From the NCBI GenBank assembly GCA_946965045.2, contig OX337231.1:3782001-3846000 (forward strand): 64,000 nucleotides of DNA, read 5' to 3'. Under the pieces are notes generated by a model that saw only the letters and a program-made list of their open reading frames with translations, was not told the origin of the DNA and did no database searches. A program made the translations under genes and the position numbers. Positions 8,946 through 30,170 of the stretch are shown here, one piece after another. Source of the stretch: Epithemia pelagica (Eukaryota > Protista > Bacillariophyta). Position 1 is the stretch's first letter. Each line of letters starts with the position of its first letter.

Positions 8946-10228
8946 GGTATCAAACAACTACGAGCAAAAATGGTGATTAAACTTGTGAGAGGCAACACAC
9001 AATCGATGCAGACTCTGATCCTTTTGTTGGTGACAATCGGCCTCGAAATGATAACAAACCGGGTTTTAAAAGCATATCCGTTGAACGTAGGTCCAAGACC
9101 AGGCACTTTGGATAGTTAGAGCAATGGCGAGCGGTTCCTCTCGTCAACGGATCTATGGGCTCTAGTGAAAATAAGCATGAACGGCTCCAACAGAGTCCAA
9201 CGGATGTCCCAGCGGCTCCAGCTGATTATTCGGTCGCATTTGGGGATAGTTACGTACAATACAATAGTATGCCTCTATCTAGCTAGCAACAACGCCAATC
9301 CGTAGAGGAGCGACCTGACAACGAGAAGGTCACAGTCCTTCAATGGATAAGAACAGTCATGTCGTACCAAAAGCAACAGCTGCACAATTCCTGGATTACT
9401 CAATCATGAACCAGGAAAGGTAGTGGTACAGAAACCCCTGTGGCGAGCTGTTGTTGTTGTTCTACTTGTTGTTGTGGTTGGTTGGCCATGGGTTCGGTCG
9501 TTGCTCCTGACACACACATTGAGTAAAAAATGGTGGTGATGGGGATATTCGATTTACCTCTGGAGAGTCGACCAAGACTAGTGTGTGACTCTATGAGTTT
9601 GCGTTGCGCAAGTGTACCTACTACACATAAAAACAAAACACAAAGGACGCATGGAGCTATAGTAGTGAGTGGCTTTTTGGTGCTGCGTGAGAGGAAAAGC
9701 GACGACGTTTGTGGTCACTCTCTCTCGGCCACTGACTCCACGGCAACACAGCTCGGATACTGTTCTGTTTCTGGGGGTAGCTCTACTATAGGAGCGAAGC
9801 AGTGTTCCTCTGGTATTCAAGGCGGGCTCTCTTGCGATTGCGATGTGTGTAGCAACAATCAAAACTTTCTCCAGAACAAAGAGAATCGTGGGGGAAGTTG
9901 AGGGAGCATCATCATCATCATCATCATCATCATCAAGGTCATGTCAATGTCAAAGAATCAACCACGGCACATGACAGTCATGGTGTTCCCGTTTTGTGGG
10001 AATGCATCCTGCGATCGCAACCTTGTCGCAAGTCATGGACTGTCAGAAAAAGAGTACCGTTAGACCGAGCCTCCCGCAACACGTTCGCAATCCCCGCTCG
10101 CAGCAGTTTGCGACTCGGGGATTCCATCACCACAAAAATATCCACGATGCTCTCACAACTCCAAACCATTCAAAACGCAAAAGCATCCAGCAACACACAC
10201 CCTCCTCACCTGCAATCAAACCAGAACC

Positions 10229-11137
10229 ATGTCGATCACCGTTCAGTCTTTTCTCACTGCCTACTTGGAACCTTCCTTCCAAGAAAGTTTGAATCGTTTG
10301 TACCATGATTTGGGAAATCAATCTCCCGAAACATGGGCCAAGAATCTCTACCAGACTTTGTGTAAGGACCCGACCCATCCGCATGCCTCACTGCTCAACC
10401 GAGATCGTAAAAAGTGCCTCCAGTTGGAGTACGATCTGGTCAATGCCTGGGAAAATGCATCGAGTCCAGACGACTTTGAACAAGACATTGTCAACATCTT
10501 TCAAGTATCGCGCTTGCGCAAAATTCTCTTTATCTGTCTTGTCATGGACCGTGCCCAGTCCTTGTATCGAATGCAGCTACCATCCTCCACCTATTATGGT
10601 ATGCATTGGTATGCGAAGGAACATGTCGCACTTCTCGAAGGAAACGAAGAAGACCATTCCATCGAGGCAGCCTCCATTCCTTCGCTCATGGACAAGGCCT
10701 TGGAAAGTCTCAAAATGGCCTTGACCACGTACAAAGGCTCGCCCACCATGAATCGCCGTCTCTACAAGATCATTCATACCAAGGCATTTGGTCTGCTGCA
10801 AGACGCGGATATTGCTCGTTGGTCTCTTCCAGCCTTGGCAACCTTTGTGCAGCGACCGATGACAACTACTACAACTATTAGCACCTCGTTGGTTTCGGGC
10901 ACGAAACGAAGTGCCCCCGCTCCCACGCTCACCGAGACAGCGCAGGAAAACAAGGAGCTTGTGGAGCGTCTCAAACGTGCCAGAGTCGGAGTGTCCGATC
11001 CGAACCTGATTGTTCAACGTTATGTCAATATTTACAATGAATCATCATCTTCATACATTCGACATGCATCGTCAGTGACTGAATTGCCATTCGTACAGAT
11101 ACTATTTGAAAACTATTCCTTGAAAGAACTAATATAA
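10229..11137 (+). CDS. Unrecognised helical-domain family, copy A (302 aa)
   Basis: ATG at 10229. The N-terminal ~200 aa align by eye with 14269-16101 and 19711-20385. Confidence 0.8.
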   Translation: MSITVQSFLTAYLEPSFQESLNRLYHDLGNQSPETWAKNLYQTLCKDPTHPHASLLNRDRKKCLQLEYDLVNAWENASSPDDFEQDIVNIFQVSRLRKILFICLVMDRAQSLYRMQLPSSTYYGMHWYAKEHVALLEGNEEDHSIEAASIPSLMDKALESLKMALTTYKGSPTMNRRLYKIIHTKAFGLLQDADIARWSLPALATFVQRPMTTTTTISTSLVSGTKRSAPAPTLTETAQENKELVERLKRARVGVSDPNLIVQRYVNIYNESSSSYIRHASSVTELPFVQILFENYSLKELI

Positions 11138-11760
11138 ATCCATCGACGTAAGAGACACTATAACTTTAAAGACATGCCTCCGATTCATTTTCCTGCTGTG
11201 TTCCGATAGATTTTCCTGTTTCATGATAGGATGTTCTGATGAGAATATAGATCGCGAGACCAATGGTCCGATCAAAAATACACCACTCTGTTTTATGAGC
11301 ACATCCGTGAAAAATACGTCCAAGACCAGACATTATAATTTTTTAGGATGGCGGCAAGTGTATCTGATCCGGTGAACCCGTTTTCAGTTAGCCGACGGCA
11401 TCTGGCGTGCGAGGCTACACTGGGTTTGGTCCATGAATGGAAGAAATAAGAAATCCATTGGCGTAAACACCTTTATAATTGAAAGATATGTCTCCGACAA
11501 GACTTCTTGTTTCACCATAATATAATCGATCGGGGAATTGGTTGGTGCTCGATCAAATAGATACCACTTTGGGCTTTATGAGAGCATCCTTTGGAAGTAG
11601 GTCCAAAAGAATTATGATGGTGGTGAGCGTGTCAATAACTGAATGGTAGGCAATAGTGAAAAGGAAAAATTAACCGCTGAACCCATTTTAACATAGCACG
11701 GCATTTTGCGAGCGAGGTGACAAAGGGTATGGTTCACTGAGTGTCATGTTTAGTGGCCTC

Positions 11761-13821
11761 CTAAAATGGGTTGGGTTTGGTTAAACTTGGACGGTCGTCT
11801 TCTCTCCACCTGTTCAAGGAGTCAAAGTGGTGTTTTGCATCCTCCGCACACAACACTTTGGCAACCGGGGTCTGGAAGGAAACCGTATTACCGTCACGAC
11901 TTTCTTGATTGAAGACCCTGTCAACCATTTCTTGTAGCTTGACATGATGCTGGTGGACCCATGTGTTACCGGGGAAATCGGGATCTTCGGGGTCAATCAA
12001 ATCTGCATAAAAATACATGAGTGGAATGCATTGTCCCGATGTGGCCAACACGTGCACTAGACCGTTGCGGCCGACAAGGGTATCGCCCCGTTCGTGAAAA
12101 CGTTGTGTGGTGAGCATTCCCCGGAGACGCGCCACCATGATGCAGATTCGTCCGTATCGACCACAATACGAGTAAGGATCGTTGGCGGTATATATTCCAT
12201 CCCCAAAAGACGAACCGTTGGTAGAAACCCGAATCAGTTTGGAATCTCGTTCCTCTTTTGTGAGCAATCCGTTGGTTTGGATTCGACCTAAATTTTCTAG
12301 CCGTGTCCAGTGGTATCCAATATCCACATGGACGGGTTTGCGTTGATGCCGATACTCGTTTTGTGTGGTAATCAGCTTTTCCGCCATGGGAATCATATCA
12401 TCCAATGCAATGGCCTGGATCCAACTTGTTTCTTTCATGGCGTATGAGACCGGTGTTGTCTGCAACCTCAGACGTGACTGCTCCAGGGATTGTTGGAGTC
12501 GGCATTCTTGTTGGAGATTCAACACGAGTTCCACCAATTGCCAGGCTCGTCCCGTATGTGTGGAGGCAAAGTGGACATGTTCCAGTCCTCTTGTATAGCG
12601 TTGATCACAGAGATCGAATTGTTGTTGCGAGGCCCTGGCATAGTCGGCATCGCTGCGCCAAATTAGCCCTAATTCTTCGGCACCGCTCTTGGCACATTCA
12701 ATGACGGGAGCATCCAAATCATCTAGTTTCTGGGCATGCTTACAGGAAGGCCAGTAATATGTGATGCCCTCCATCGGGCAAACCGCTTCTGTTTTATCTT
12801 GAATAGATACTGGAAATGGTTTCGTATGCTCGTCTTCATACACACTCCCAAGTTCGACAAGAGATTCTTTAATTGCTTGTGCGAGATCTGCATCATATTC
12901 TTCATCCAGTTCTGTGGGCTGCTGGTGAGGAACGCCATCTTTTTCTGTTGGTTGTAGTTCTTTGCCTGTGCGATCCTTGGAGTTTTGTTTCTGTGCGCGA
13001 TCGCCAATGCATGGCTTGGGATACAGGGTGCCTTTCATGGAATCGGCCTCTTCTTTGGCATCTTGACCGTGCATTACGGAAGGCTTCTTTTTCTGGTCGT
13101 CTTCATTCCCAAACTTGACGGCGAGAGATGCATCAATAGCTGCGGCTAGATCTGCGTCGTAATCCTCCTCTTGCTCTACTGTATTTTGTTTGGGAGAATC
13201 CAAGAGTTGGCTCATGTCCTGGAAGGGTACAACAAGAGCCCTGGCATTGGCCTCGTCGCTCAAAGTACTCTGATTTGGTGCTGCAGCACCAACTCGCAGA
13301 GCATTTCCTTCAGTATTCTGACTGCTGCTGGTGTACTTTCCCTGGTGGTGTACATTCCCAAGTTTGGCTAGAGATACCGTAAGAGCCGTTGCGAGATCTG
13401 CGTCATAATCTTCGTTGGGTTCTGTACGTTGCAAGTCTGAAACACCACCTTTTTCGCCTGGCGGTGGCTTTGAGTGTGTGTCGTAAACGAACACTGCGTC
13501 TTTGAGGGATTCCTGCATGGCTCTGGTAAGGTCGTCATCATCATCCTCAACCTCGTCGAGGATATGGCTGCCATACAAATCGTCGTCCTCGTCGACGACA
13601 TGGTTGCCGTACGAGCAGGCCTGTGGATCTACTTCCGAGACACTTTGTTCAAGTCCACCACGGGTTATACTGGCCGGGTGATCTTTGCATTTGGTCCTAT
13701 CCACGTCTCCTACTAAGGCTCTTTCGGAAGGACACTCTTCATTTGGGGACCGTGTTGTCGCGGATTCAGCTTCCCTCTCAAGGGTCTCTTCTTGGTGCTG
13801 TTCGTTTGTTCTGGAATTCAT
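11761..13821 (-). CDS. UIM-repeat plus PARP-like (H-Y clade) ADP-ribosyltransferase domain protein, 686 aa
   Basis: Four UIM-like repeats (DDDDLTRAMQESL, DYDADLATALTVSL, DYDADLAAAIDASL, EYDADLAQAIKESL). C-terminal GYHWT..NLGRIQTNGL..NGSSFGDGIYTA..YG, then VHVL..GQCIPL. Confidence 0.75.
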   Translation of the reverse strand: MNSRTNEQHQEETLEREAESATTRSPNEECPSERALVGDVDRTKCKDHPASITRGGLEQSVSEVDPQACSYGNHVVDEDDDLYGSHILDEVEDDDDDLTRAMQESLKDAVFVYDTHSKPPPGEKGGVSDLQRTEPNEDYDADLATALTVSLAKLGNVHHQGKYTSSSQNTEGNALRVGAAAPNQSTLSDEANARALVVPFQDMSQLLDSPKQNTVEQEEDYDADLAAAIDASLAVKFGNEDDQKKKPSVMHGQDAKEEADSMKGTLYPKPCIGDRAQKQNSKDRTGKELQPTEKDGVPHQQPTELDEEYDADLAQAIKESLVELGSVYEDEHTKPFPVSIQDKTEAVCPMEGITYYWPSCKHAQKLDDLDAPVIECAKSGAEELGLIWRSDADYARASQQQFDLCDQRYTRGLEHVHFASTHTGRAWQLVELVLNLQQECRLQQSLEQSRLRLQTTPVSYAMKETSWIQAIALDDMIPMAEKLITTQNEYRHQRKPVHVDIGYHWTRLENLGRIQTNGLLTKEERDSKLIRVSTNGSSFGDGIYTANDPYSYCGRYGRICIMVARLRGMLTTQRFHERGDTLVGRNGLVHVLATSGQCIPLMYFYADLIDPEDPDFPGNTWVHQHHVKLQEMVDRVFNQESRDGNTVSFQTPVAKVLCAEDAKHHFDSLNRWREDDRPSLTKPNPF

Positions 13822-14268
13822 GATCTAGGTGCTCGTTTCGGCGAGATTACTTTTAGATATGGATCCCAATGATCACACGGCCAACGACAATGGTCCTTTC
13901 GGACCTACCTGACTCACTGCATCGTTTCCAGGACGGATGCGTTGCGGTACGTGAAAGTCGCATTTGCTTGTACATCGTTCCCACCAAAACTTGATTTCCC
14001 ATTTTGATCTCTATCAACTCCGCAAATGAGACGTGGAAAGTTGCGGGTCTCGGCTTGTTCACAAATTCTCAGCGGTTGTAGTGAATCTCTTTTATTTAAC
14101 CCAATTGGAGAAATAATTGATATCCAAACGATGAGGACTACAATATGCGACCGGATGGATGTACACAGGAGAGACAGACAGACGCTCGATCCGCATTCCA
14201 TCCGTTATCCCAGAGTCGCCTTTCCTCATAAAATTGAAAACGACACAAACCTCAAGCGACAGACAAAC

Positions 14269-16101
14269 ATGGAAATGACCAAAGTGCGGATATCGCCAAC
14301 AGCAGCGTCCTCCTCGTCAGCATTGGACCATTCACGTTGGAATCATTCTGTTTCCCAGATCCAACGGTACGTTGCCCGTTTCGAAGACAGCGTCTTTCAA
14401 AAGGCATTGCAACGACTTCAGGTGGACAAGGCCCGTCATTCGTCGGATTCCGAGGTCTGGGCCCAGGCAGTCGCCCTAGCTTGGGGCAATGCGCAGGACC
14501 CCCACCATGGTCGTGCCGTCTTGTTGGAACAAGACCGACATGTGTGTATGAGCCTCTTGTATGACATGGTGGATGATTGGGCCACGGTGGGATTTTCTCC
14601 CCACTTTGCCCGAGCCATGCGCACCGTCTTTTCCCTCCGGCGCATTGTGGAGATTCTGGCAGTGGGCTTGGTCCTGACGCGGGCGCAGACACTCTATCAA
14701 GTGATTCTTCCGGGGAGTGCGACTCGAGATGGGCGACCCCTTGTGGGAACCCATTGGTTTTGTGAACTTCATAATAGTACAATGATGGGACCACAAACCA
14801 CTGCTGAGAAATCTCCCTCCACCAGTCCACCGGTATCCTCCATCACTTGTGGAGCAACCATTCCAAATCCGAGCCGAAGCTGCATGAAAGTGCCCGGCAC
14901 CATGGATCGTCGGTTATATCGCTTGTTGTATAGTCCGGAATTAGGTCTACAACGCATTCCAGCCATTGCTCAATGGTCCCAACCGCAAGCGGCACCCCTG
15001 GTGGTCCATGGGTATCCTCCCGCCCCTACACGGGTCCGTCCTCCACCACGACAAGACCCACCCACCCGCACCGAACAACCAATGACCACCAATACTACCG
15101 CATGGGTGCGTGGTCCACAGCAGTCGCTCCCGAACCAACAAGCCATGAGGATTCCAACCCAACCAAACGCGCCATTTCATCCTCCTGCAGGTGTCATTGT
15201 CCTCCTGGGTGGATCGATTCCACAAACCTTTCCCGACGATTTGCACTTTGTGTGTGGGTGTTCCAATTTTGAACCCGTCGAAAGTGACTTTGTCGTGCGC
15301 ACACCAAAACACGACGACGACTGGAGGAATGCCGAGTCCAAACCAGAACGGATTCGGCACCTCGTGCAACAAGGTCTCGCCTCTTGGGCCGAACCCCAAA
15401 CACCACAAGACCCAAACGACGAGGAGGATGCATCTGGTTCCTCTTGTATGGTAGCAAGACCAGCCGCACCTCGGTCTATCGCCGCCGCGACCACCAAGAC
15501 ACAGCAGACACTGGGCCTTACCGTGGGCCACAATGAACTGTTTCGAGAAATTGCTCGTTTCCATTTTCAAGAGAAAAAACTGCATGCTGCCCCAGTTGCA
15601 GACGAGTCCCAGCAGCAGCACATCACCTCCTCCGCACCGACTGCTGGTGTGGATCATCCAAGAAACGGCAACAACAACAATAACACTAACAATTGTTCGG
15701 TTTCTCCCGTGCGTCCGGAAACCCGAGACGTGATACACAAGGCCCATTGCGTGGCACAACACCTCCAGAAAAGTAGTAGCAAGCATTCTCGACGACGACA
15801 CGCCAAGACAAAGGCTCTTGCTGTTGCCAAAACAAAGAAGAAGAAGGCGCGCTTTCGCATTTGGAAACCCTTGTTGGGACCCACGGTTCGACGCCTCAAG
15901 GCAAGTCAGTGGTCGACGGTCCAGTTTGTCGAAATTACCGACAATGTCGGTCATTGCAAACACATGCTCGAGCCTCTGTTGCGCAAAGCACGACAGTTGG
16001 CCGTCACTTCATTGTCGTTGTCATGCTCCCAACCAACGAACGGTGTGCTTCCCCAACCTGCTGCTACCGGCACCAACGCAGCGGCCCGCATGGAAGCATG
16101 A
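14269..16101 (+). CDS. Unrecognised helical-domain family, copy B, with a long Pro-rich and basic C-terminal extension
   Basis: Likely start MEMTKV at 14269. Shares FQ..L.RL, WA, DP.H, C..L.YD.V..W, F..RR..IL...LV..RAQ.LY and TM.RRLY..GL...I..W with copy A. Confidence 0.75.
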   Translation: MEMTKVRISPTAASSSSALDHSRWNHSVSQIQRYVARFEDSVFQKALQRLQVDKARHSSDSEVWAQAVALAWGNAQDPHHGRAVLLEQDRHVCMSLLYDMVDDWATVGFSPHFARAMRTVFSLRRIVEILAVGLVLTRAQTLYQVILPGSATRDGRPLVGTHWFCELHNSTMMGPQTTAEKSPSTSPPVSSITCGATIPNPSRSCMKVPGTMDRRLYRLLYSPELGLQRIPAIAQWSQPQAAPLVVHGYPPAPTRVRPPPRQDPPTRTEQPMTTNTTAWVRGPQQSLPNQQAMRIPTQPNAPFHPPAGVIVLLGGSIPQTFPDDLHFVCGCSNFEPVESDFVVRTPKHDDDWRNAESKPERIRHLVQQGLASWAEPQTPQDPNDEEDASGSSCMVARPAAPRSIAAATTKTQQTLGLTVGHNELFREIARFHFQEKKLHAAPVADESQQQHITSSAPTAGVDHPRNGNNNNNTNNCSVSPVRPETRDVIHKAHCVAQHLQKSSSKHSRRRHAKTKALAVAKTKKKKARFRIWKPLLGPTVRRLKASQWSTVQFVEITDNVGHCKHMLEPLLRKARQLAVTSLSLSCSQPTNGVLPQPAATGTNAAARMEA

Positions 16102-17038
16102 ATCCTGCAGTAGTGCATAATCCTGGGCGTTTCGTAAACACGACGTGACGCACGTGCTGTTTGGCAAGTCTCTGTAGAGATTCATCCATCCACATATAAT
16201 AGACAATGAACGAGTGTTGAAATTACGTTCCTCGTGCGTCCTTGCCATTCGATATGGAATCTTTTATTCGTGTCACGGATGGAATTGTGGAACTCTTTTC
16301 CTCTTTCCTGTAGAGAGACCGGTACATCTTGTCTTGTGTATAGTTCTGTAGCGAGAAGAATCCATCTCCAACACCACACAATTGTTGATGTGTGGCCCTT
16401 CAAAAGCCACAAACACAAAATTGTGGAGGCCAAACGGCGAGCCAGCCGATCTGTCGATTTTCATTTCCCCATAAATGGGGGAACGCCGAGGGACCAGCAG
16501 ATGTGGATGGAGACACGGCAACGTCTATTATTTTATACATAGCCGCAACTGTGGAACGAATACAATACGTAGATCATTGGGAGGGATAGCCCTTTTCCTC
16601 AACTCTTGGAAACAGGACACAGATGGATTCCGGTGAGTGAAATCATTGTAGGACAAGGCAGCAACGACGAAATGCAACTTTTGTGCGAATCCATCCATCC
16701 ACAGCAACACAAGGCGCGCGCAAGACAAACGTTGCAACACAGTTTCTCTCTTGTAGAATGCCATTACGACAAACCACCTAGCTAGGTAGAGGCGTGTACC
16801 ATCCACGGCCGAGACTTGGGATTCTACAGAAAGAATCCATCCTTCTTGTTGTCTGTCTGTCTTTCTTCTTCCGGCCGCCTTCTTTTGTTTCGTCTTTGTG
16901 CTACCGGCGTTAGGAGACAATTTTTTTTGTTTGTGTTTGTCATGTGATGGGTTCGTCGCCTCGTTTGGTGATTCTCATTCTACATATATATAGAATATCT
17001 CCAAACATTTTTACTGTTCACTGTTGGACAAAGGCGAT

Positions 17039-17264
17039 AATGAGAGAGTCGGAGGATCGGCGTGCGACAGAGTCTGTCTGTCTGTACGACTATTTCTTCG
17101 CGCCGTTGGACTACTCCCCGGCGGGGGAGAATCATGAGGATTAGAGATGGAATGCACGATGTACAACGCATCGCCATCGATTATGCGGGACTCACCCATA
17201 CCAGGCTTGGGGGTGACACCAACACGGCTGGTCCGCCGTTCCCCCAAATTTGGGGATCATCGAA
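17039..17264 (+). repeat. Left arm of an inverted repeat flanking the spondin gene
   Basis: 17039-17072 is the reverse complement of 18946-18979 (33/34 identical). 17236-17257 is the reverse complement of 18861-18882 (22/22, includes the palindrome CCCCAAATTTGGGG). Confidence 0.85.
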
Positions 17265-17834
17265 ATTTTTGTTGTGCCACAAAATGCTGACTGCGAACTT
17301 TTTTTTTCTCGTAGACGCACCCATTTTTGATGGGATTGCCATAATATTTGGCCCAAGACGTCGTCCTATTCGACCACGAGGATTTATAGTATATTTGATA
17401 TAGAGAATGCCCCAAACTAATAATTTCTCGACGATAAGGCCCAAAACTTCGTGAGCAGACTCTGCTGCCGAACTGTCCACCAGCCAACGAGAAACAGACT
17501 CCACAAAAATTGGAGTAGGCTAGGCTCGCATGTGATAACTTTATATTTTAGGCGTGATGCTCCACTAGTATTTTATGTTTGAGGCGATGGTAGTCCTGCA
17601 CAAGCACAAGAAGCAGATTCCGATGCTATTTAGCCTGGTGGTACAAGCTTGTACCAAGCAGGTGCAGGGTGCTCGTGCACTCATGGGCAATCGTTGGAAT
17701 TTGGCTACGACACGAGTCTTGACAAGCAAACCACCAAAAACGAAAACACTTCCTCCAAATCTTTTTTTCGTCTCACAATTCCACTGGCCCACCAATCGAC
17801 AAGAAGAAGAACAAGACGAAATCATCAGCTCACC

Positions 17835-18554
17835 ATGAAGTTTGCCATTGCCGTCGTTACTACCTTGGTCGTCTCCATGTCCATCCTCACGGAACCGGTC
17901 CAAGCGGGAGGAAAAAAGGAAAGCAAGTCCCGTGCCAAGAGGAACAAGAGGTCCAAAAAGACCTTGAATATCAAGCTGACCAATGCCATGGAACGACAAA
18001 TTTTGTCGCCCTTGTTTTACATGACACACAAGTGTGGGTACAAATTGTGGACGATTGGAGAACCGTCCAGTCCAGCCCTCGAAGTCTTGGCCGAAGATGG
18101 CAATCCCACCCCCTTGGTAGACATGTACGAACATGAGCCCTTTGTCTGTCAAGCCGGACGTACCGATGCACCGACCATGCCCGGCAAAACCACAGTCCTG
18201 AGCTTGGAGGAAGATGATTACAAGTATTGCGATTGTATCACCACGGCTTCCATGTTGATTTCCACCAACGATGCCTTTGCGGGGTTGCTCGACATGCCCC
18301 TTGACGAATTGGTCACGAGCAGTCATCCCACCTTTTCCTTTGCCTTTGATGCGGGAACCGAAGCCAATACAGAACTCTGTGTCGACATTCCCGGTCCTCC
18401 CTGTGACGCCATGTCGGGCAATGTCAACGGCAATGACGATCAGGAAGAGTATGTGCATATTAATCGAGGCATTAGTGGAATCTATGACATTCCCAATCGT
18501 TACGATTGGCGTGCGGCCGTCTTGTTTGCCAATGGATACTATTCGGAATATTAA
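17835..18554 (+). CDS. Secreted single-domain spondin (Spondin_N, bacterial-type) protein
   Basis: Signal peptide MKFAIAVVTTLVVSMSILTEPVQA and a K/R-rich propeptide. Motifs QILSP..TH, LAEDG, ASML.STNDAF.G, DAGTEANTE..IPGPPC, VHINRGI. Confidence 0.85.
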   Translation: MKFAIAVVTTLVVSMSILTEPVQAGGKKESKSRAKRNKRSKKTLNIKLTNAMERQILSPLFYMTHKCGYKLWTIGEPSSPALEVLAEDGNPTPLVDMYEHEPFVCQAGRTDAPTMPGKTTVLSLEEDDYKYCDCITTASMLISTNDAFAGLLDMPLDELVTSSHPTFSFAFDAGTEANTELCVDIPGPPCDAMSGNVNGNDDQEEYVHINRGISGIYDIPNRYDWRAAVLFANGYYSEY

Positions 18555-18844
18555 GGAAAAAAGACGACGACAAGCACACGAAATTGGATTCTTGCTGTGG
18601 AGAAAGTCTCGACCGTGGTTGGTACATGCTTGTGAAACCACATGGAGGGACACAATGGAAATGGATTTGAGAAATTCTTGAGTTTGCTCCAAAGTTTGCC
18701 GTTGGCGCTGTGCTGTGGATAGATGAATTCGCACAATAGTTCCATTCGTCCTTGCTGCCTGGTCCTATGATGGGTATCTTTCCTCTCTCCAGCGAAGTGT
18801 TTTCTCATGGTTCAGGATCATGAGAAGACGGAAGCCAAACATTC

Positions 18845-18979
18845 TTCGATGATCCATGACATCCCCAAATTTGGGGGAACGGTTTACGGACGGTGGACGG
18901 CGCACGGCGCGCGGAATATTTCAAACTGTCGAGCCGACAGGCTCGCTCTGTCGCACGCCGATCCTCCGGCTCTCTCATT
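18845..18979 (-). repeat. Right arm of the inverted repeat flanking the spondin gene
   Basis: Mirror of 17039-17264. Weaker similarity extends outward to about 16995 and 19045. Confidence 0.85.
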
Positions 18980-19710
18980 TCCCCTTCGCCAAACAAATCC
19001 CCAGTCAACAACAAAGTCAACAACAAATGTTTTCGGAGAGATAGGAAGCGACGAAGCTATCACTGGCATAGATGTCCAAATGAGACTCAAAGAGCAACGA
19101 AACATAACAGAGCCTCCCCCATGTACCAAGACGAAGCAAAAGAAGATGGACGATAATCGATTCCCTGGAGTGCCCGGTGGAACAATTCCACAATCCAACC
19201 GGTTCTCTTCGCATCCGACTATTGCAGTCAAAATTCAGTACGAGGCACCGTGTTTCCGTGCACGTTTGACGACGCTTCGTTCTTGTCTTTATCGCAAGAA
19301 CACGCCCCTGCGATACTCTCCCATGTAAACATAGCCGACGACGAGTTTGATTGATTTCGCGACAATCGACCAAATCAGGCAGTCTTTCCTTGTTTGCGTG
19401 CAACCATCAGATCCGGCTACTTGATCCGTGGTGGAAGATCTATTTTTTATCGAATGAGAGGGAGAGAGAGGGAACAAGGCAGTCCATTTGAATCCATGTC
19501 TTGTGGGTTCCCATTCCAAGAATGAAATTCCGATCCTCATGACCTTTGCTCCATCGAAAAAGTGAATTCTACTTGCAGCACGTACCAACGTCATACAAAG
19601 AGAGAAAAAAAGTTTCAACCAAATTGTTCTTAGAGAAGGACATTTACCGATACGTCTGGGATCAAACTGGTATGCTCTCCAATGGGATTGATTTACTTGG
19701 CTTCGACACA

Positions 19711-20385
19711 CTACTCCTTTGTTTTCGGTTCCTCTTTTGGGCACATGGTAACAGAACCAGTTTCACCATCAGTCCGTAGTGGCTGGAACCACCAACGGTG
19801 CAAGACTGGATCCTGCTCGCACAGGCCCAGAATTTTGCTTTGCAGCAACCGATCCAACTGCTTGGAATAATGGTGATTTGAACCCTTTGGATCCAATACT
19901 GTGATACGGGCACGTTCCAGGACCAGACAAACACTCAAAATGCGAAACAACCGACGACGTTTAAACACCAAGACAATGGCCTCTTCAAATACGCTGTCGT
20001 CTTGAGGATCAGCTGGTGGGGAATTCGAATCGTACGCTTGCCAGTGATCCACCAATTGGTACAATAGTTGCAGACAGGCTTGAGAATGTTCGTGCACCTG
20101 GAGGGCTTGCATGTTGGTTGGATCCTGGGCCAAGGTTTGGTACACTGTGGTGGCCCACATGGGTCGATCCTTGCCATGCAGAGACGCCGAACTATCGGCC
20201 CATTGGTACAAGCGTTCCAACCGTTCTTGATACGGCAAGTCATTGTAGGCTTGTACAAGGGGTGCAATCAGCGCCATGGCCGCAGTCAAGTTTGAGGAAC
20301 GATTGCTCTCGTCTGGGGACCAATAATCTCCTCCATTGGTCCCAGTGGGACGCTGTTTCGGGGGAGTCACAGTCGTCGGGGGCAT
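19711..20385 (-). CDS. Unrecognised helical-domain family, copy C (almost the domain alone)
   Basis: First ATG at 20385. YQERLERLY..WATTVYQTLAQDP..CLQLLYQLVDHW..FEEAI..VFKRRRLFRILSVCLVLERA..LGL..W aligns with copies A and B. Confidence 0.8.
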   Translation of the reverse strand: MPPTTVTPPKQRPTGTNGGDYWSPDESNRSSNLTAAMALIAPLVQAYNDLPYQERLERLYQWADSSASLHGKDRPMWATTVYQTLAQDPTNMQALQVHEHSQACLQLLYQLVDHWQAYDSNSPPADPQDDSVFEEAIVLVFKRRRLFRILSVCLVLERARITVLDPKGSNHHYSKQLDRLLQSKILGLCEQDPVLHRWWFQPLRTDGETGSVTMCPKEEPKTKE

Positions 20386-23236: not shown

Positions 23237-24326
23237 TGTTGCTCGGTCTGTTGTCAAAAGTATTCCGGGGAGACGCTTCGATTGGTTGGATCAATGGTTG
23301 TGTTTTGTTGTTGTTGTTGTTACAGAAAGTACAAAAAAGTTTGAGACATGACAAGCGGCTCGTACAATCTCCACCATCATCCTTGGGCCCGAACCAATCC
23401 AAGACAACACACAAGTGTTGTCACTACCCCAAAGAACCAGAACCGAACCGCGGTGACAACAGCCATCAACATGGCACGACAACACCGTTCCCCCTGCTGC
23501 TTCGACAAAAAACCATGGGGTCCCTCTTACATTGGACGGAGAGGATTCCCTTTTCCCTGCTGAACCCATGAGTCGATCATCAAGGTTCCACCTTGTCATC
23601 ATCATTCACATGGATCTCCATTGTGTGGGACGAGAGAGAGCAAATAATCGAAAAGTTTGGATCTTGATGCGGTTCTATCACCCGCGTTTCAGTCGCGTAT
23701 TATCGCCGCTTTCCTACGGGACCAGGAGCAAGACCAAAAGCGGGTCCCGATTCCGAAGAATGCCAAAGCAAGATCCGTTGAGATTGAGAATTGAGGCAAA
23801 GCATAATGAAAGAGTGCCGACCATGGTGTATCTTGAGGAGAGCCGGACGAGACTCCAATATGGTCCAATTCACATGGATCGATCCAGGTCCATTTGTTCT
23901 CTCATTACCTGATCCAGGACCGAACGACTTCAGTTCCATGTCCATTTCCAATCACTTCTACAACAATACACCAGCCGATCCAATGGCGGCAAGCAGGAGG
24001 ATCCTTTATAGAAAGACGGCTTGCATCGTTTGTCAGGACAGATCAAATAGCGGACTTCATCGACAAGAACCACCACAAGAACCAAACGACGACAAGTGAA
24101 TCATTCGGAGCAGCAGCACTGTCTTTGGAAGCAAAGCCGTATCATTACAAACAAGTTTGGTCGGAGGACGGAACCGAGTGCCAGCGACGACACACAAACA
24201 GAACGATTGGACGTACGACAATAAGGCAACAAAAACGAGCCTTTGCCAACGTCCCAAACAATAATATTCCAAAGCGACAACAACAACAAGAACAACAACA
24301 ACGACAAGAACAACAACAACAATATC

Positions 24327-27300
24327 ATGGCATTGTCCTTCTCCTCCGTTCGGTTCGGCGGCCCTGTCACTCGCCATTCTTCATCTTCTTCTTCGTGGTC
24401 CTCCTGCTTCGTTTGGATCTTTGCTGGCCTCCTCCTGAGAATCGCACTCCTTGCTCCATTCCTCCCGGCAGCGGCTACCAACACAACTTGTCGAAGTGGT
24501 GCCACGGGCGCGATTCCATCCTCTCGATCCGACCACGTCTTGGTGTGGTCGGACGAATTTGACTACTCCAAGAATGCCGACAACGAGGAGTGTTGGAGCC
24601 ACAAGTGGTGGCTGCCACATCAAGATCCACAACAAGACCACAATCCCCATGGCAACGATACTACTGTTGTCTCCATTACACCGGAAGGAACCTTGCGATT
24701 GACCGTGGCACCACAACCCCAATCCGCATCGTCGTCGTCTCGCACATGGAACGCACGCCTCTACAGCAAGTTTGCCCTTGTCTATGGTCGTGTGGAAATC
24801 CGCGCCAAATTTCACACACCACCCGGTACTCGAGCCATGCTGTGGTTGCTGGGACAAGACTACTTCCACGACAACACTAACAACCACGACAACCACAGCC
24901 ACCCCTTGGTCCCCTGGCCGTATTGTGGTGAAATCGACCTGGTCGATGCCTTTTGGCATTCGGCGAGTCCGGAACCCGCCCTGCGAGCCGCGGTTCATAC
25001 GCCCCAACAGTACGGAAGTACGGCTCGTCGGGGCTATGCCACTACCAATCATTCGTATCCTCCCGACGAATTTCAAGTTTATACCTTGGACTGGAACGAA
25101 ACGACGGTACAAGTGTCGGTGAATGGTCAAGCACCCTTTTTCACCTATCAACCAGCCATTCGCACGGCCCCGACATGGCCGTTGGATCGGCCACACTCGT
25201 TGCTGGTCAGTGTGACCGTGGGAGGTGCCGAGTTGGGTTTGGGCACTCCCACCACGACTAGAATGCCACCAACCGCAGTCAGTTTGGAAGTGGATTACAT
25301 TCGCATCTATCAACGCGAATCCCAACCGCCCCAAGGAGCACCCCATCCACGTCTGGCCGCCCAATGGGTGACACCCGTCTTTTCTCGTGCCTATCCCAAT
25401 ACGAATGAGGATGGAACCACCACGGCCCATCGGATCCAATCCTGGAATGCCAGCAGTACCAATGGATCCTCCTCCTCATCGGCGCAGCAGTGGCAATTGG
25501 TCTTGAATGAGACCGTGATTCAATATACGAATCTGTCCCAAGCGGTTGTTCAACTTTACGAGTCGAGTTTCGTCAATTCGTCGAATCTCACACACTTTCA
25601 CTTTAGTTTGTGGACTCCGAATGCGGCCGTGAACACTGTCTTGACCGTGACGGTGGTCGACGCGGGCATGGATGGAGTGTTGGGCACGGGCGACGATGGA
25701 ATTGTGGTTGAATCCACATTCGACCACTTGCGTCGCAATCAATGGATCTCGTACACGGTGCCGTTGGTGGATCCGGACGGCCACCAGCCGCCCGCACCCC
25801 TGCAACGAGCGCGCATTGGACAAGTTCGGTTTACCACAAGCAGCACACTACCAACCGTCTATCTGGATCACTTGTACTTGTTTCAACACGTTTCGGAACC
25901 ACACGTTCCGGCACCACGTCCCACACGGCCACCGGAACAGGTTGTTTCCTTGTGGACGGACGACTCCTTCGTGTACCAAGATATTGCTGTGGATACCTGG
26001 ATGACGTCGTGGTCCGTGGCGGCCTCGGTCGAAGAGCATTCCATTCCAGCCGCCGTTCCCAACAACCCTACTACGAAAAGTCATGTTGTCCAAAAGTATA
26101 CCAATGTCAGTTTTGTCGGCATTGAATTTGTCACCCATGCCGTGAATGCGTCGGAACTAACCGGCTTGCATTTGGATGTCTGGATGCCCCTCATAATGAC
26201 TTCTACCGTCCGTCCGCATACAGAGAATGAGGGGTGGACCGCTCTCAAGATCAAATTGGTGGACTTTGGTCCCAATCTCGTGTTTCAAAATGGCGAAAAC
26301 AAGACTGGCGACAATGACGACAGTGAATTTGAAGTGTCCCTCTCCAACTTGACGCTGGGAACCTGGATGAGATTGGATCTGCCCTTTGCCTTGTTTCCCG
26401 GATTGACACCACGACGAGAACATGTGACGCAACTCATTGTCTCGGGACAACATGGATTGCAAGTCCTGGACACTTTGTTTCTCACCAATGTCTACTTTTA
26501 TGTGGAGGATCCACACAACGAGCCGGCACCTTTATCGACCGATTCCCCCTCCAGTGTGGTGGCCCTGTACAGCAATGTCTACGACACGGTCCCCGTCGAT
26601 ACGTGGTTGGCCGACTGGTCAGGACCGACGGTGCACTGGAATCCGGATTACACGATTGGCGACACCAACAAGAACCACGATTCCGTCCTCAAATACTCTA
26701 CCCTGACGTGGGTAGGTGTGGAAACCCGAACACAACCCCTGGACGCATCGTTCATGACTGGATTTCGGATGCATTTGTGGACACCCGAATGTTGGGTCTT
26801 TCGAGTCAAATTTACCGATTTGGGCAATGGCAAGGACATTGTCCAATCCGAACACGAAATCCTTGTGGATAATTTGGTCCCCAAGGAATGGATTTCGATT
26901 GACATTGCCTTGTCAAGTTTGTCCAACTTGCAGTCAATGAGTCATATCGGCGAACTCATTTGGTCGGCGGATTGGCTGTGTACGGCCTATATTGACAATG
27001 TGTACTTTTATGGATCCTTGCAACCCACGCAGGCCGCACCCACTCCCACAGCGTACATGGAGGCCACAGAGGATACGGTCATTTCCCTCGATCTCTCCTC
27101 TGCTTCCATTCCGCCATCATCTCCCATGAGTGGCGTGGCAGGGACTGTCGACGATATCACCTCCACGGCCGAACTGGTGAATTTAAAAGTACTTTATATT
27201 CCGCAAACGGCAGGTGATGTTCCCGACTACCCCATCCTCATGTACGAGAACCAGCCTGGTTTGTCCGATGGAGCAGCTATTGAAATGACACCCATGGATG

Positions 27301-27857
27301 TATCCGACATGACTCATTTTCATGTCCATCTTTGGACACTGGACTGCCCACGAATGGGAATCAAACTGGTAGATTCTGGTCCCAATGGTGTCTTGGACTG
27401 TCCCATAAACACAAACAATGATCCGAATTGTGGTTCGGATGATTCCGAACAAGGAATAGTGATTGACACGAGGCTTCAAGAATGGATTGCTGTGGACATA
27501 CCCTTATCCCCGTCATTGGGGCTGACCAACGTCGCTCAAGTCCTGTTTTATGTTCCTCCTGTCGACACAACGACCACTGTCAGCTCCTCTTCTTGTACGG
27601 TATATTTAGACAATCTCTTGTTTTACTCGCAACGCCCACAAGGCACGGCATCATCATCACCAGCACCACAGGGGCAACCCCTACGACACACGCCGCAGCG
27701 TTCCTGGAAGCATGTCATTGCCATTGCGTCCGATTCATCCTTTTCTCCTCGTAATAGAGCCAGTCAAGGAACTCGAGTGTCCATGACAACTGGATTGGTA
27801 TGGATGACAAGCGCGTATTGGATTGGATGGTATGCTATACCGTGGTTGAGCTGTTGA
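24327..27857 (+). CDS. GH16 laminarinase-like domain plus four ~170-aa bacterial-type repeat modules; N-terminal hydrophobic segment and hydrophobic C-terminus
   Basis: LVWSDEF, LTV..P, ARL.SK..YGRVEIRAK, WP.CGEIDLVD, HTP, F.VY.LDW, WP.D.P..LL..V.VGG, LEVDYIRIYQ. Repeats have the consensus P.P..V.SL...Y..V.VDTW..KY....GIE...DAS.MT.FH..LW..KLVD.G..DD.E...W...DIPL..DN.YFY. Confidence 0.85.
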   Translation: MALSFSSVRFGGPVTRHSSSSSSWSSCFVWIFAGLLLRIALLAPFLPAAATNTTCRSGATGAIPSSRSDHVLVWSDEFDYSKNADNEECWSHKWWLPHQDPQQDHNPHGNDTTVVSITPEGTLRLTVAPQPQSASSSSRTWNARLYSKFALVYGRVEIRAKFHTPPGTRAMLWLLGQDYFHDNTNNHDNHSHPLVPWPYCGEIDLVDAFWHSASPEPALRAAVHTPQQYGSTARRGYATTNHSYPPDEFQVYTLDWNETTVQVSVNGQAPFFTYQPAIRTAPTWPLDRPHSLLVSVTVGGAELGLGTPTTTRMPPTAVSLEVDYIRIYQRESQPPQGAPHPRLAAQWVTPVFSRAYPNTNEDGTTTAHRIQSWNASSTNGSSSSSAQQWQLVLNETVIQYTNLSQAVVQLYESSFVNSSNLTHFHFSLWTPNAAVNTVLTVTVVDAGMDGVLGTGDDGIVVESTFDHLRRNQWISYTVPLVDPDGHQPPAPLQRARIGQVRFTTSSTLPTVYLDHLYLFQHVSEPHVPAPRPTRPPEQVVSLWTDDSFVYQDIAVDTWMTSWSVAASVEEHSIPAAVPNNPTTKSHVVQKYTNVSFVGIEFVTHAVNASELTGLHLDVWMPLIMTSTVRPHTENEGWTALKIKLVDFGPNLVFQNGENKTGDNDDSEFEVSLSNLTLGTWMRLDLPFALFPGLTPRREHVTQLIVSGQHGLQVLDTLFLTNVYFYVEDPHNEPAPLSTDSPSSVVALYSNVYDTVPVDTWLADWSGPTVHWNPDYTIGDTNKNHDSVLKYSTLTWVGVETRTQPLDASFMTGFRMHLWTPECWVFRVKFTDLGNGKDIVQSEHEILVDNLVPKEWISIDIALSSLSNLQSMSHIGELIWSADWLCTAYIDNVYFYGSLQPTQAAPTPTAYMEATEDTVISLDLSSASIPPSSPMSGVAGTVDDITSTAELVNLKVLYIPQTAGDVPDYPILMYENQPGLSDGAAIEMTPMDVSDMTHFHVHLWTLDCPRMGIKLVDSGPNGVLDCPINTNNDPNCGSDDSEQGIVIDTRLQEWIAVDIPLSPSLGLTNVAQVLFYVPPVDTTTTVSSSSCTVYLDNLLFYSQRPQGTASSSPAPQGQPLRHTPQRSWKHVIAIASDSSFSPRNRASQGTRVSMTTGLVWMTSAYWIGWYAIPWLSC

Positions 27858-28370: not shown

Positions 28371-30170
28371 TTGCTCGTGAAAAAGTGTGTTGCTTCACCA
28401 TCCAGTGAAACGTTCTTTCCCGTATCAAGTCGACAGTTCCATTGGTCTGCCACCAAGCTTGTGTTATTGATTCTCTCTGTTTCGGTCCGCCTCGCAGTTT
28501 GTACTTTGCCAGTAGAACTCTCAAACAATAACGAAAACTACATTGTTCTCGGGGATGGCACGGCCGACTGTAAGTCGTCTGAGTATCGAGCAATTACATC
28601 CAAGGAAGAATGTCTGTTGGCCGGAGAGGCCATTGGAGGTATCCCCCACCCGAACACTGGTACTGCATATGCTCATAAGGATTGGGTACACACACCTTGT
28701 GGATGCTTTTTATCGTACTGGGATTTGGGAGGGACAGATAGTGGTTGGGTGATTCATTTTGACATTGGACGCACCGAATGTAAGGGTGACTATGTGGACG
28801 AGTACCCTGTCATTTGCAAGCGCGCCAACTGGGAGCCGGGTGATGTGTTATCGGATTTTTATTCCTTGGAGGAGGATGGAACAGCAGAATGCAGCACCGA
28901 CTTATCGATTGCTTCCGCAGAGGAATGCTTGGGTGCCGGACTCTCTATCGGAGCATCGGTTGAACCAGACAGCAATTATGCCCTTGTAAAGAGCTGGGGA
29001 CACACTCCTTGTGGTTGCTTCCTTTCCGACTGGGGCATAAACGGATGGGTGATACATTACGATACTGGAGAACAGGCGTGTGTGGGAGACCCTACCCATC
29101 CGACACACATCTATCCAGTGCTTTGTCGCAAGAAAGACTACACGCAAGAATACCATCAAGTAGGGAATGCCATTCGCGACTGCTCTCAGTATAGTCCCGA
29201 AGGAATGACCGTGACGGCTGTTCAGAGCGAAGAAGAATGTATGGCAGCTGGTCTAAGTTTGGGTGGGACTTTGCGCTATACCTTTATGGTGGCATGGTTT
29301 TGGACGCACACTCCCTGTGGCTGTTTCATTCAAATATCAGCTGATGAATCGAATGGAGACATTCATTGGAATTATGGAGAAACATGCCAAGCGAATCCGG
29401 ATTTTCAAGTCATTTGTCAGGTGACTACATCAAACGATATCTTTATCGACGCCCCCACCTCTGTACCCACTTCAGTACCCACTTCAGGACCGACATTTGG
29501 ACCCACTTCAGGACCGACATTCGGACCCACTTCAGGACCGACATTCGGACCCACTTCAGGACCGACATTTGGACCCACGCTGGTACCAACGGCCGGGCCC
29601 ACTAAAGTACCTACCCCTACAGATCCAGAGGAACCCACGGACGATGTCGCATTTTTCCAGGGAACTGCGACACAAGTACTCGAATGGTGCAAAGGCGATG
29701 ACACAGGTCCATACTGCTGCAATGGCCAAGAGGCCTGTGAAGGCTGGGATTCTGTCCTTGAAGATGCCATTACCATATACAAGGGCGCCTGTATTGGTAA
29801 TGGAGCTTGTCGGGGAGCCTTCATAACGGCGTTTTTTGGAAGCAATTCCTGTATGGGAGAGCATGCCTGCGATCGAAGTACTTCTTCCTATCTTCCCATT
29901 GACTCCTTTTTCGTGGGTGATAACTCCTGTGTGGGTCCCGGTGCCTGTTCCCTATCATATGGCAGCTCCATTCTAAGTGGTAAGACACTTATAATGATGG
30001 TCGGGCCAGGATCATGCATAGGATATATGTCTGCATGTGCCGAACTCTACGCTCCTACCATTGTTATCGGAGCTGTGTCGTGTGTGCGCAGTGAGGAGAG
30101 CGTCTTTTCGACCTGTTCTCATTTGAAAACTGAAAGCAAGATTGAGATTGGGGCGAATGCCTGTATCTGA
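28371..30170 (+). CDS. Cys-rich modular, probably secreted protein (3 'EECL.AG..GG/TPCGCF' modules, PT-repeat stalk, 'C.G..AC' repeat region); first exon not resolved
   Basis: Open frame with a signal-like segment KLVLLILSVSVRLAVC and three ~70-aa modules. There is no in-frame ATG near the 5' end, so an upstream exon is presumed. Confidence 0.7.
   Translation: MLVKKCVASPSSETFFPVSSRQFHWSATKLVLLILSVSVRLAVCTLPVELSNNNENYIVLGDGTADCKSSEYRAITSKEECLLAGEAIGGIPHPNTGTAYAHKDWVHTPCGCFLSYWDLGGTDSGWVIHFDIGRTECKGDYVDEYPVICKRANWEPGDVLSDFYSLEEDGTAECSTDLSIASAEECLGAGLSIGASVEPDSNYALVKSWGHTPCGCFLSDWGINGWVIHYDTGEQACVGDPTHPTHIYPVLCRKKDYTQEYHQVGNAIRDCSQYSPEGMTVTAVQSEEECMAAGLSLGGTLRYTFMVAWFWTHTPCGCFIQISADESNGDIHWNYGETCQANPDFQVICQVTTSNDIFIDAPTSVPTSVPTSGPTFGPTSGPTFGPTSGPTFGPTSGPTFGPTLVPTAGPTKVPTPTDPEEPTDDVAFFQGTATQVLEWCKGDDTGPYCCNGQEACEGWDSVLEDAITIYKGACIGNGACRGAFITAFFGSNSCMGEHACDRSTSSYLPIDSFFVGDNSCVGPGACSLSYGSSILSGKTLIMMVGPGSCIGYMSACAELYAPTIVIGAVSCVRSEESVFSTCSHLKTESKIEIGANACI
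29478..29573 (+). repeat. Coding minisatellite, 24 nt x4 (PTSGPTFG)
   Basis: CCCACTTCAGGACCGACATT(T/C)GGA repeated four times in frame. Confidence 0.95.

Follow-up and report, generated by a model that had tools for sequence, protein, structure and literature searches.

In bacterial Thoeris-type defence, receptor domains recognise nucleotides made by TIR enzymes. In plants, EDS1 forms a pair with either PAD4 or SAG101. The EP domains of the two partners together build the pocket in which a TIR-made nucleotide is bound, and once the ligand is in place, the pair makes contact with the LRR domain of a helper NLR (PMC12856790). Published studies treat the EP domain as the defining mark of the EDS1 family, found in no other, and place its origin in seed plants (PMC9806590; bioRxiv 10.1101/572826). 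Here we describe a domain carried by three genes (A, B, and C) of the diatom Epithemia pelagica, the predicted fold of which probably resembles that of the plant EP domain. The three genes lie within a stretch of 64,000 nucleotides, hereafter the window, which corresponds to positions 3782001–3846000 of contig OX337231.1 (C4:3782001-3846000, C4 being the contig that carries the window). The genome searched in this study comprises 60.5 Mb in 23 contigs of this rhopalodiacean diatom, and negative window coordinates denote DNA upstream of the window start.

The domain family and its three copies in the window

A preliminary description of the window had proposed that three open reading frames (ORFs) share one helical domain, visible as three sequence blocks and recognisable from no known family. 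BLASTP bore out the sharing: A and B align with an E value of 9e-27 (29% identity over 258 aa), A and C with 2e-19 (37% over 121 aa), and B and C with 7e-13 (32% over 145 aa). The pairwise alignments are significant, and no confident Pfam match was found. A tblastn search using relatives from outside the window as queries found exactly three copies in the window, those in A, B, and C, and the reading frames are open in all three. All three blocks are visible in alignment A1, block 3 of C being present only as a short remnant. The domain starts 5–120 residues from the N-terminus in the three proteins. The polar motifs LNxDRK, MDRAQ, GMHW, and PTMNKR are conserved across the family, and the Trp of GMHW is the sole invariant residue of the wider family.

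Genome searches, first with A as the query and afterwards with profile A1, identified 18 domain copies in 15 genes, which are located on contigs C1, C3, C4, C6, C8, C13, and C16. Two tandem domains (d1-d2) are found in three of the 15 genes, and other genes possess long N- or C-terminal extensions. In a maximum-likelihood tree of the domains, A belongs to a d1 clade (support 100/98) and B and C to a d2 clade (support 95/97); a third clade consists of the N-terminally extended genes. Sequences of Epithemia clementina were placed in both the d1 and d2 clades, indicating that the split between A and B/C is older than these species. When the profile was run with HMMER against 1.84 billion cluster representatives, 184 of them were detected at E≤1e-3 and 123 at E≤1e-10. 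The 184 representatives therefore point to a real but unannotated family, and A, B, and C almost certainly belong to a protein family that is both real and under selection.

The nearest named relatives are hypothetical proteins of E. clementina (ACA910_020395, _017842, _004381, _010421, _020401, and _016468). They are true sequence homologues, exhibit 41–53% identity to A, and include two-domain and domain-plus-TIR forms; they are themselves unannotated and add no functional knowledge. A word search with alignment A4 found no further named taxa, and thus its distribution outside Epithemia is drawn from metagenome proteins. One of the relatives, P0031, is encoded on a 6981-bp contig (L033; Logan SRR7244357) that is AT-rich (38% GC) and contains tightly packed, co-directional ORFs. 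These ORFs gave no Pfam or PHROG matches, and P0031 showed no viral relative in a viral contig scan. At C4:456328-457419, fragments of the family occur in a degenerate array, with their order shuffled and with TAA and TAG stops; this array is probably a pseudogene.

The architectures of the three genes differ. Gene A (10229–11137, + strand, 302 aa) consists of one d1-type domain (10232–10870, +; hmmsearch 3.2e-93, profile positions 3-200), a linker, and a stump of 14 residues left over from a second domain that has been lost. The stump, PNLIVQRYVNIYNE (11000–11041, +), is where the DNA homology to A', the duplicate of A outside the window, stops in self-blastn. The "short tail" ascribed to A in the preliminary description consists of the linker followed by this start of domain 2. 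Gene B (14131–16101, +) encodes 656 aa as called in the second haplotype contig; the start at 14269 given previously is a later ATG in the same frame. It carries a d2-type domain (14350–15018, +; hmmsearch 2.1e-45) and a long tail, which amounts to about 360 aa rather than the roughly 380 aa first estimated and matched nothing in a Pfam search. Gene C (19711–20385, −, 224 aa) consists almost solely of the domain, as had been noticed, but its d2-type domain is incomplete, with about 55 residues deleted internally. The N-terminal half (19894–20277, −) covers profile positions 4-109 with an hmmsearch E value of 1.1e-26 (7.9e-38 with profile A1 in the genome search), and the block 3 remnant (19783–19887, −) covers positions 156-189 with an E value of 0.0047 (alignment A1). 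The GMHW block between these two parts, including the invariant Trp, has been deleted.

Predicted fold and proposed role

Sequence-level searches did not identify the domain. Pfam returned no family at E≤1 for A and only chance-level matches for B and C. Searches of the PDB with profiles A1 and A2 found no true relative and neither EDS1 nor PAD4; matches to antibody heavy chains were rejected as a chance "GMHWV" match. The Pfam EDS1_EP model (PF18117) was silent against the whole genome at E≤10, which is uninformative because the controls were silent too. ESM Atlas gave no usable neighbour for A, no PADLOC model matched the domain, and the viral fold library BFVD contained no match.

Structure prediction gave a different picture from that of the sequence. 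An AlphaFold2 model based on the 18-copy alignment is almost all helical, in agreement with the helical nature proposed at the outset, with a predicted local distance difference test score (pLDDT) of 90.3 and a predicted template-modelling score (pTM) of 0.86. When 48,161 PDB representatives were searched with VIA-align, the top three hits were the EP domains of PAD4 (7xey_B 297-454; Z 10.0, root-mean-square deviation (rmsd) 2.8, 132 aligned residues), rice EDS1 (8zf0_C; Z 9.7), and Arabidopsis EDS1 (4nfu_A; Z 8.3), and the next-best fold had a Z of 5.7. In a second look with VIA-align, the top 11 hits were all EP domains of EDS1 or PAD4 (Z 8.2-10.8), followed by a hit at 4.8; the EP alignments spanned 132-142 residues with rmsd values of 2.8-3.3 Å, except for one entry with 149 residues at 5.4 Å. 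The d1 domain of a second model, that of the two-domain protein A' built on a different alignment, again matched EP domains, this time including SAG101 (Z 10.9, 10.9, and 9.3; next 6.5). In both independent models, the EP hits lie 3-5 Z units above every other fold, and EDS1, PAD4, and SAG101 entries also recur in the Foldseek top 50. A specific match is favoured because of this gap to the background and because all three members of the EDS1 family, and nothing else, were matched. On the strength of these models, the domain probably has an EP-like fold. The domain is therefore unrecognised at the sequence level, as the preliminary description held, whereas its predicted fold is not without a counterpart.

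The fusion partners and gene neighbours of the family point to TIR. A Pfam search of 72 longer relatives found TIR in five, together with single cases of LRR, C2, class III cyclase, bromodomain, trypsin, and UEV. In the five TIR cluster representatives, one of which is from E. clementina, the domain is followed by the TIR (TIR_2 E values of 1.6e-18 to 2e-11), and TIR fusions occur in three separate branches of the domain tree. LRR and the domain are combined in one relative. The present genome also contains a domain-plus-bromodomain gene and, on C3 (L017), a domain-plus-TIR gene (TIR_2 5.5e-16). The TIR of the latter aligns to TcpB/AbTIR and scores against ThsB-like models in PADLOC; it retains the Glu of the W-x-x-x-E-L motif, which we take to be the catalytic residue. 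Besides the fusions, a TIR gene (PF01582, 1.8e-7; L036:3461-4705, +) converges on a family gene (L036:6068-7000, −) on C16 (C16:2876.5-2880.0k) at a distance of 1.4 kb. The chance of such an adjacency is roughly estimated at ~0.04. An ORF with a weak LRR match is located just upstream of this gene pair.

These features suggest a mechanism in which the domain would act as a signalling adaptor or receptor module in the pathway of TIR, an NAD-consuming enzyme. The domain is found alone (A and C), with a long tail (B), as a d1-d2 tandem, or in fusion with TIR, LRR, C2, cyclase, or bromodomain. By analogy with the heterodimeric EP domains, a d1-type protein (A) may pair with a d2-type protein (B or C), and the pair would bind a partner or a TIR-made nucleotide and then pass the signal on. 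Heterodimerisation, ligand binding, and any immune role are what we infer. A role of the domain in TIR/NAD-linked signalling, as an EP-like adaptor or sensor, appears to us to fall just short of probable. Binding of a TIR-made nucleotide by the domain is doubtful. We also regard as unlikely the fullest form of the proposal, an EDS1-like receptor layer in diatoms, in which EP-like pairs of d1 with d2, separate (such as A with B or C) or tandem, would sense NAD-derived nucleotides produced by TIR enzymes, including those that are joined to the domain in one protein.

Several observations weigh against this proposal. The EP link has no support from sequence, since Pfam, the EDS1_EP genome search, and the PDB profile searches were all empty. 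The Foldseek scores for EP chains (E ~0.4, probability ≤0.41) are not significant, and VIA-align itself cautions that a Z below ~13 for helical bundles may reflect a common arrangement only. The alignments to EP cover only 132-142 of the ~200 residues, at 6-13% identity. The fold searches cover d1-type domains, whereas B and C are d2-type. The AlphaFold2 model of the two-domain protein has a pTM of 0.52, so that no confident packing of d1 against d2 is predicted and the model lends no support to a d1-d2 pseudo-heterodimer. Unlike EDS1, the proteins A, B, and C have no N-terminal lipase-like or hydrolase domain before the EP-like domain, and in plants the sensor is not fused to the TIR enzyme whose signal it receives. 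The other partners (bromodomain, C2, trypsin, UEV, and cyclase) fit a general interaction module equally well. Finally, the gene between A and B has a weakly PARP-like C-terminus, but the E. clementina orthologue has no PARP-like neighbour within 10 kb. This linkage is confined to one duplicated locus in the present genome, and a conserved system including the PARP-like gene was therefore rejected as unproven.

The domain may instead be a plain protein–protein interaction module, a homotypic or heterotypic adaptor that builds signalling complexes, recruits TIR, LRR, C2, cyclase, or bromodomain proteins, and binds no small molecule. Its occurrence alone, in tandem, and in fusion with many unrelated partners is the usual pattern of an adaptor, and the expansion into d1, d2, and a third clade agrees with such a role, as does the fact that EP domains themselves also serve as dimerisation and LRR-contact surfaces. 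In contrast, the strong conservation of charged and aromatic positions (R59, D106, G123, and W126) is more suggestive of a pocket than of a flat interface, and the lack of predicted d1-d2 packing noted above also speaks against an adaptor. We consider this explanation tenable, if somewhat on the unlikely side.

Less favoured still is the explanation that the domain, helical and specific to diatoms, has nothing to do with TIR or immune-like signalling and acts, for instance, in nuclear or chromatin regulation, and that its likeness to EP is a convergence of helical bundles. The missing sequence similarity to EP and the insignificant Foldseek scores would be expected in that case, and the bromodomain fusion in this genome, a basic, nuclear-localisation-signal-like stretch read by eye in the tail of B, and the presence of TIR in only 5 of the 72 long relatives point in the same direction. 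It is, however, difficult to reconcile with the 3-5 Z units that separate EP from all other folds in two independent models and with a TIR link that is seen as both fusion and adjacency, and we judge it improbable.

Local duplication and neighbouring genes

Self-blastn revealed that A, the PARP-like gene, and B form one arm (9969–16705) of an inverted segmental duplication. The twin arm (L025), which begins 2 kb upstream of the window, extends from window position -9176 to -2084 (C4:3772825-3779917). The B'-PARP' segment (-9176..-3887) is 94.1% identical to the PARP-B segment in the window (16705..11438) over 5.3 kb, and the d1 segment of A' (-3144..-2084) is 89.4% identical to that of A (11041..9969). 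Both domains are kept in A' (465 aa) and in the orthologues P0001 and P0003, whereas A ends 14 residues into domain 2; A is therefore a truncated derivative. The synonymous divergence (dS) amounts to 0.22 in A, 0.10 in B, and 0.05 in the PARP-like gene; such unequal values point to gene conversion or to events that occurred stepwise. A second haplotype contig (L027), which is 98.9% identical to the window, retains A, for which the called gene is likewise 302 aa long and identical, as well as B and the PARP-like gene. Just after B, this contig has a Ty1/copia-type insertion (gag and RVT_2; L027:14144-19693) that has no counterpart in the window.

The ratio of non-synonymous to synonymous substitution rates (dN/dS) since the duplication, which rests on small substitution counts in every case, is 0.17 for the domain of B compared with that of B' (8 non-synonymous and 14 synonymous changes), showing that purifying selection acts on the domain. 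The tail of B has evolved faster than the domain (0.66), and the values for A and the PARP-like gene are 0.37 and 0.45, respectively. C lies on a long branch (1.56) of the domain tree; this branch, together with the loss of ~55 residues including the invariant Trp, indicates that C may be decaying, which we regard as quite possible while leaning slightly against it. It is very improbable that all three ORFs are decaying or non-functional, as pseudogenes or by-products of segmental duplication: the deletion and long branch of C, the lost second domain of A, and the degenerate array with stop codons at C4:456-457k would fit, but all three frames are open, the dN/dS values of the B domain and of A are low, and A and B are intact in the second haplotype. 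The preliminary description had viewed the three copies as an old local expansion that has been retained. The age holds for the divergence between A and B/C, which reflects the old d1/d2 split common to E. clementina and the two-domain genes. The expansion is local only in part: the family is spread over seven contigs, and the cluster in the window owes much to the recent inverted segmental duplication. Retention by selection is supported by the ratio of the B domain, less strongly by that of A, and is doubtful in the case of C.

The gene between A and B (11761–13821, −), duplicated together with them, encodes a protein of 686 aa with a weakly PARP-like C-terminus and a weak UIM. It scores 17.5-18.6 bits against Pfam PARP (PF00644), below the cutoff of 26.7, with E values of 0.0014-0.003 and only over profile positions 37-100. 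The UIM_2 match has an E value of 0.034, and PARP clusters in ESM Atlas score 0.94. The gene is one of three paralogues on C4, the others being at C4:3775730-3777787 and C4:3850451-3851662; the third paralogue, 4.4 kb past the window end, is 45% identical over residues 282-681. Between B and C, an ORF (17565–18734, −) is flanked by a 57-nt inverted repeat (82% complementary; 17039–17095 and 18923–18979). A "spondin" label for this ORF was not reproduced, as no Pfam family beyond a chance-level match was found. Farther along the window, a large ORF with a GH16 domain (1.1e-6) is present at 24243–27857, and an ORF with DUF7640 and PT repeats at 28371–30170.

A different neighbour was observed on a contig from an uncultured raphid pennate diatom (L028), a placement based on the best matches of its ClpB, which are Epithemia, Seminavis, and Fistulifera. 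On this contig (L028:4654-6684), a patatin phospholipase gene (E 5.4e-30) ends 82 bp upstream of the family member P0139. A candidate 72-nt GT..AG intron (L028:5902-5973) would join the patatin and the family domain in frame. The joined model would give the lipase-then-EP-like order of EDS1, but patatin has a lipase fold different from that of EDS1.

Comparison with plant and bacterial TIR signalling

A full-text literature search combining EP domain, EDS1, and diatom found no relevant paper. Even if the link to EP fails, the analysis has uncovered a conserved, selected, and unannotated family of diatom domains that counts 184 or more cluster representatives and whose fusion partners are informative.

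The Thoeris receptors of bacteria offer a possible functional analogy, in that a non-enzymatic module works with a TIR enzyme; no relation in fold or sequence was found between these receptors and the diatom domain. The likeness to the plant proteins is closer. The EP domain (PF18117) of EDS1, PAD4, and SAG101 is, like the diatom domain, an all-helical bundle of ~200 residues, and it is the only well-scoring structural match of the diatom domain in the PDB, as judged from the predicted d1 models (Z 8-11). In the plant family, conserved residues of the EP pocket bind pRib-AMP/ADP or ADPr-ATP. The two also share an association with TIR, which for the diatom domain is one of gene fusion and adjacency, and a division into two paralogous types, d1 and d2 in the diatom and EDS1 and PAD4/SAG101 in plants. 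Unlike members of the EDS1 family, the diatom domain has no detectable EP sequence similarity, and unlike plant EP, it can be present twice, in tandem, within a single polypeptide. The analysis does not show the diatom proteins to be members of the EDS1 family: the sequence model finds no match, and there is no lipase-like domain.

An EP-like fold in two paralogous types, fused to an apparently catalytic TIR, would nevertheless make the diatom domain a testable candidate for a receptor of TIR signals in a major algal group of marine and fresh waters. Such a candidate would bear on the reading of TIR-made signals beyond plants and bacteria and on the origin of the EDS1 node of plants. If the proposal is true, the EP receptor fold would not be an invention of seed plants; the fold would then either date back much further or have been recruited a second time, independently, for TIR signalling in an alga with a secondary plastid.

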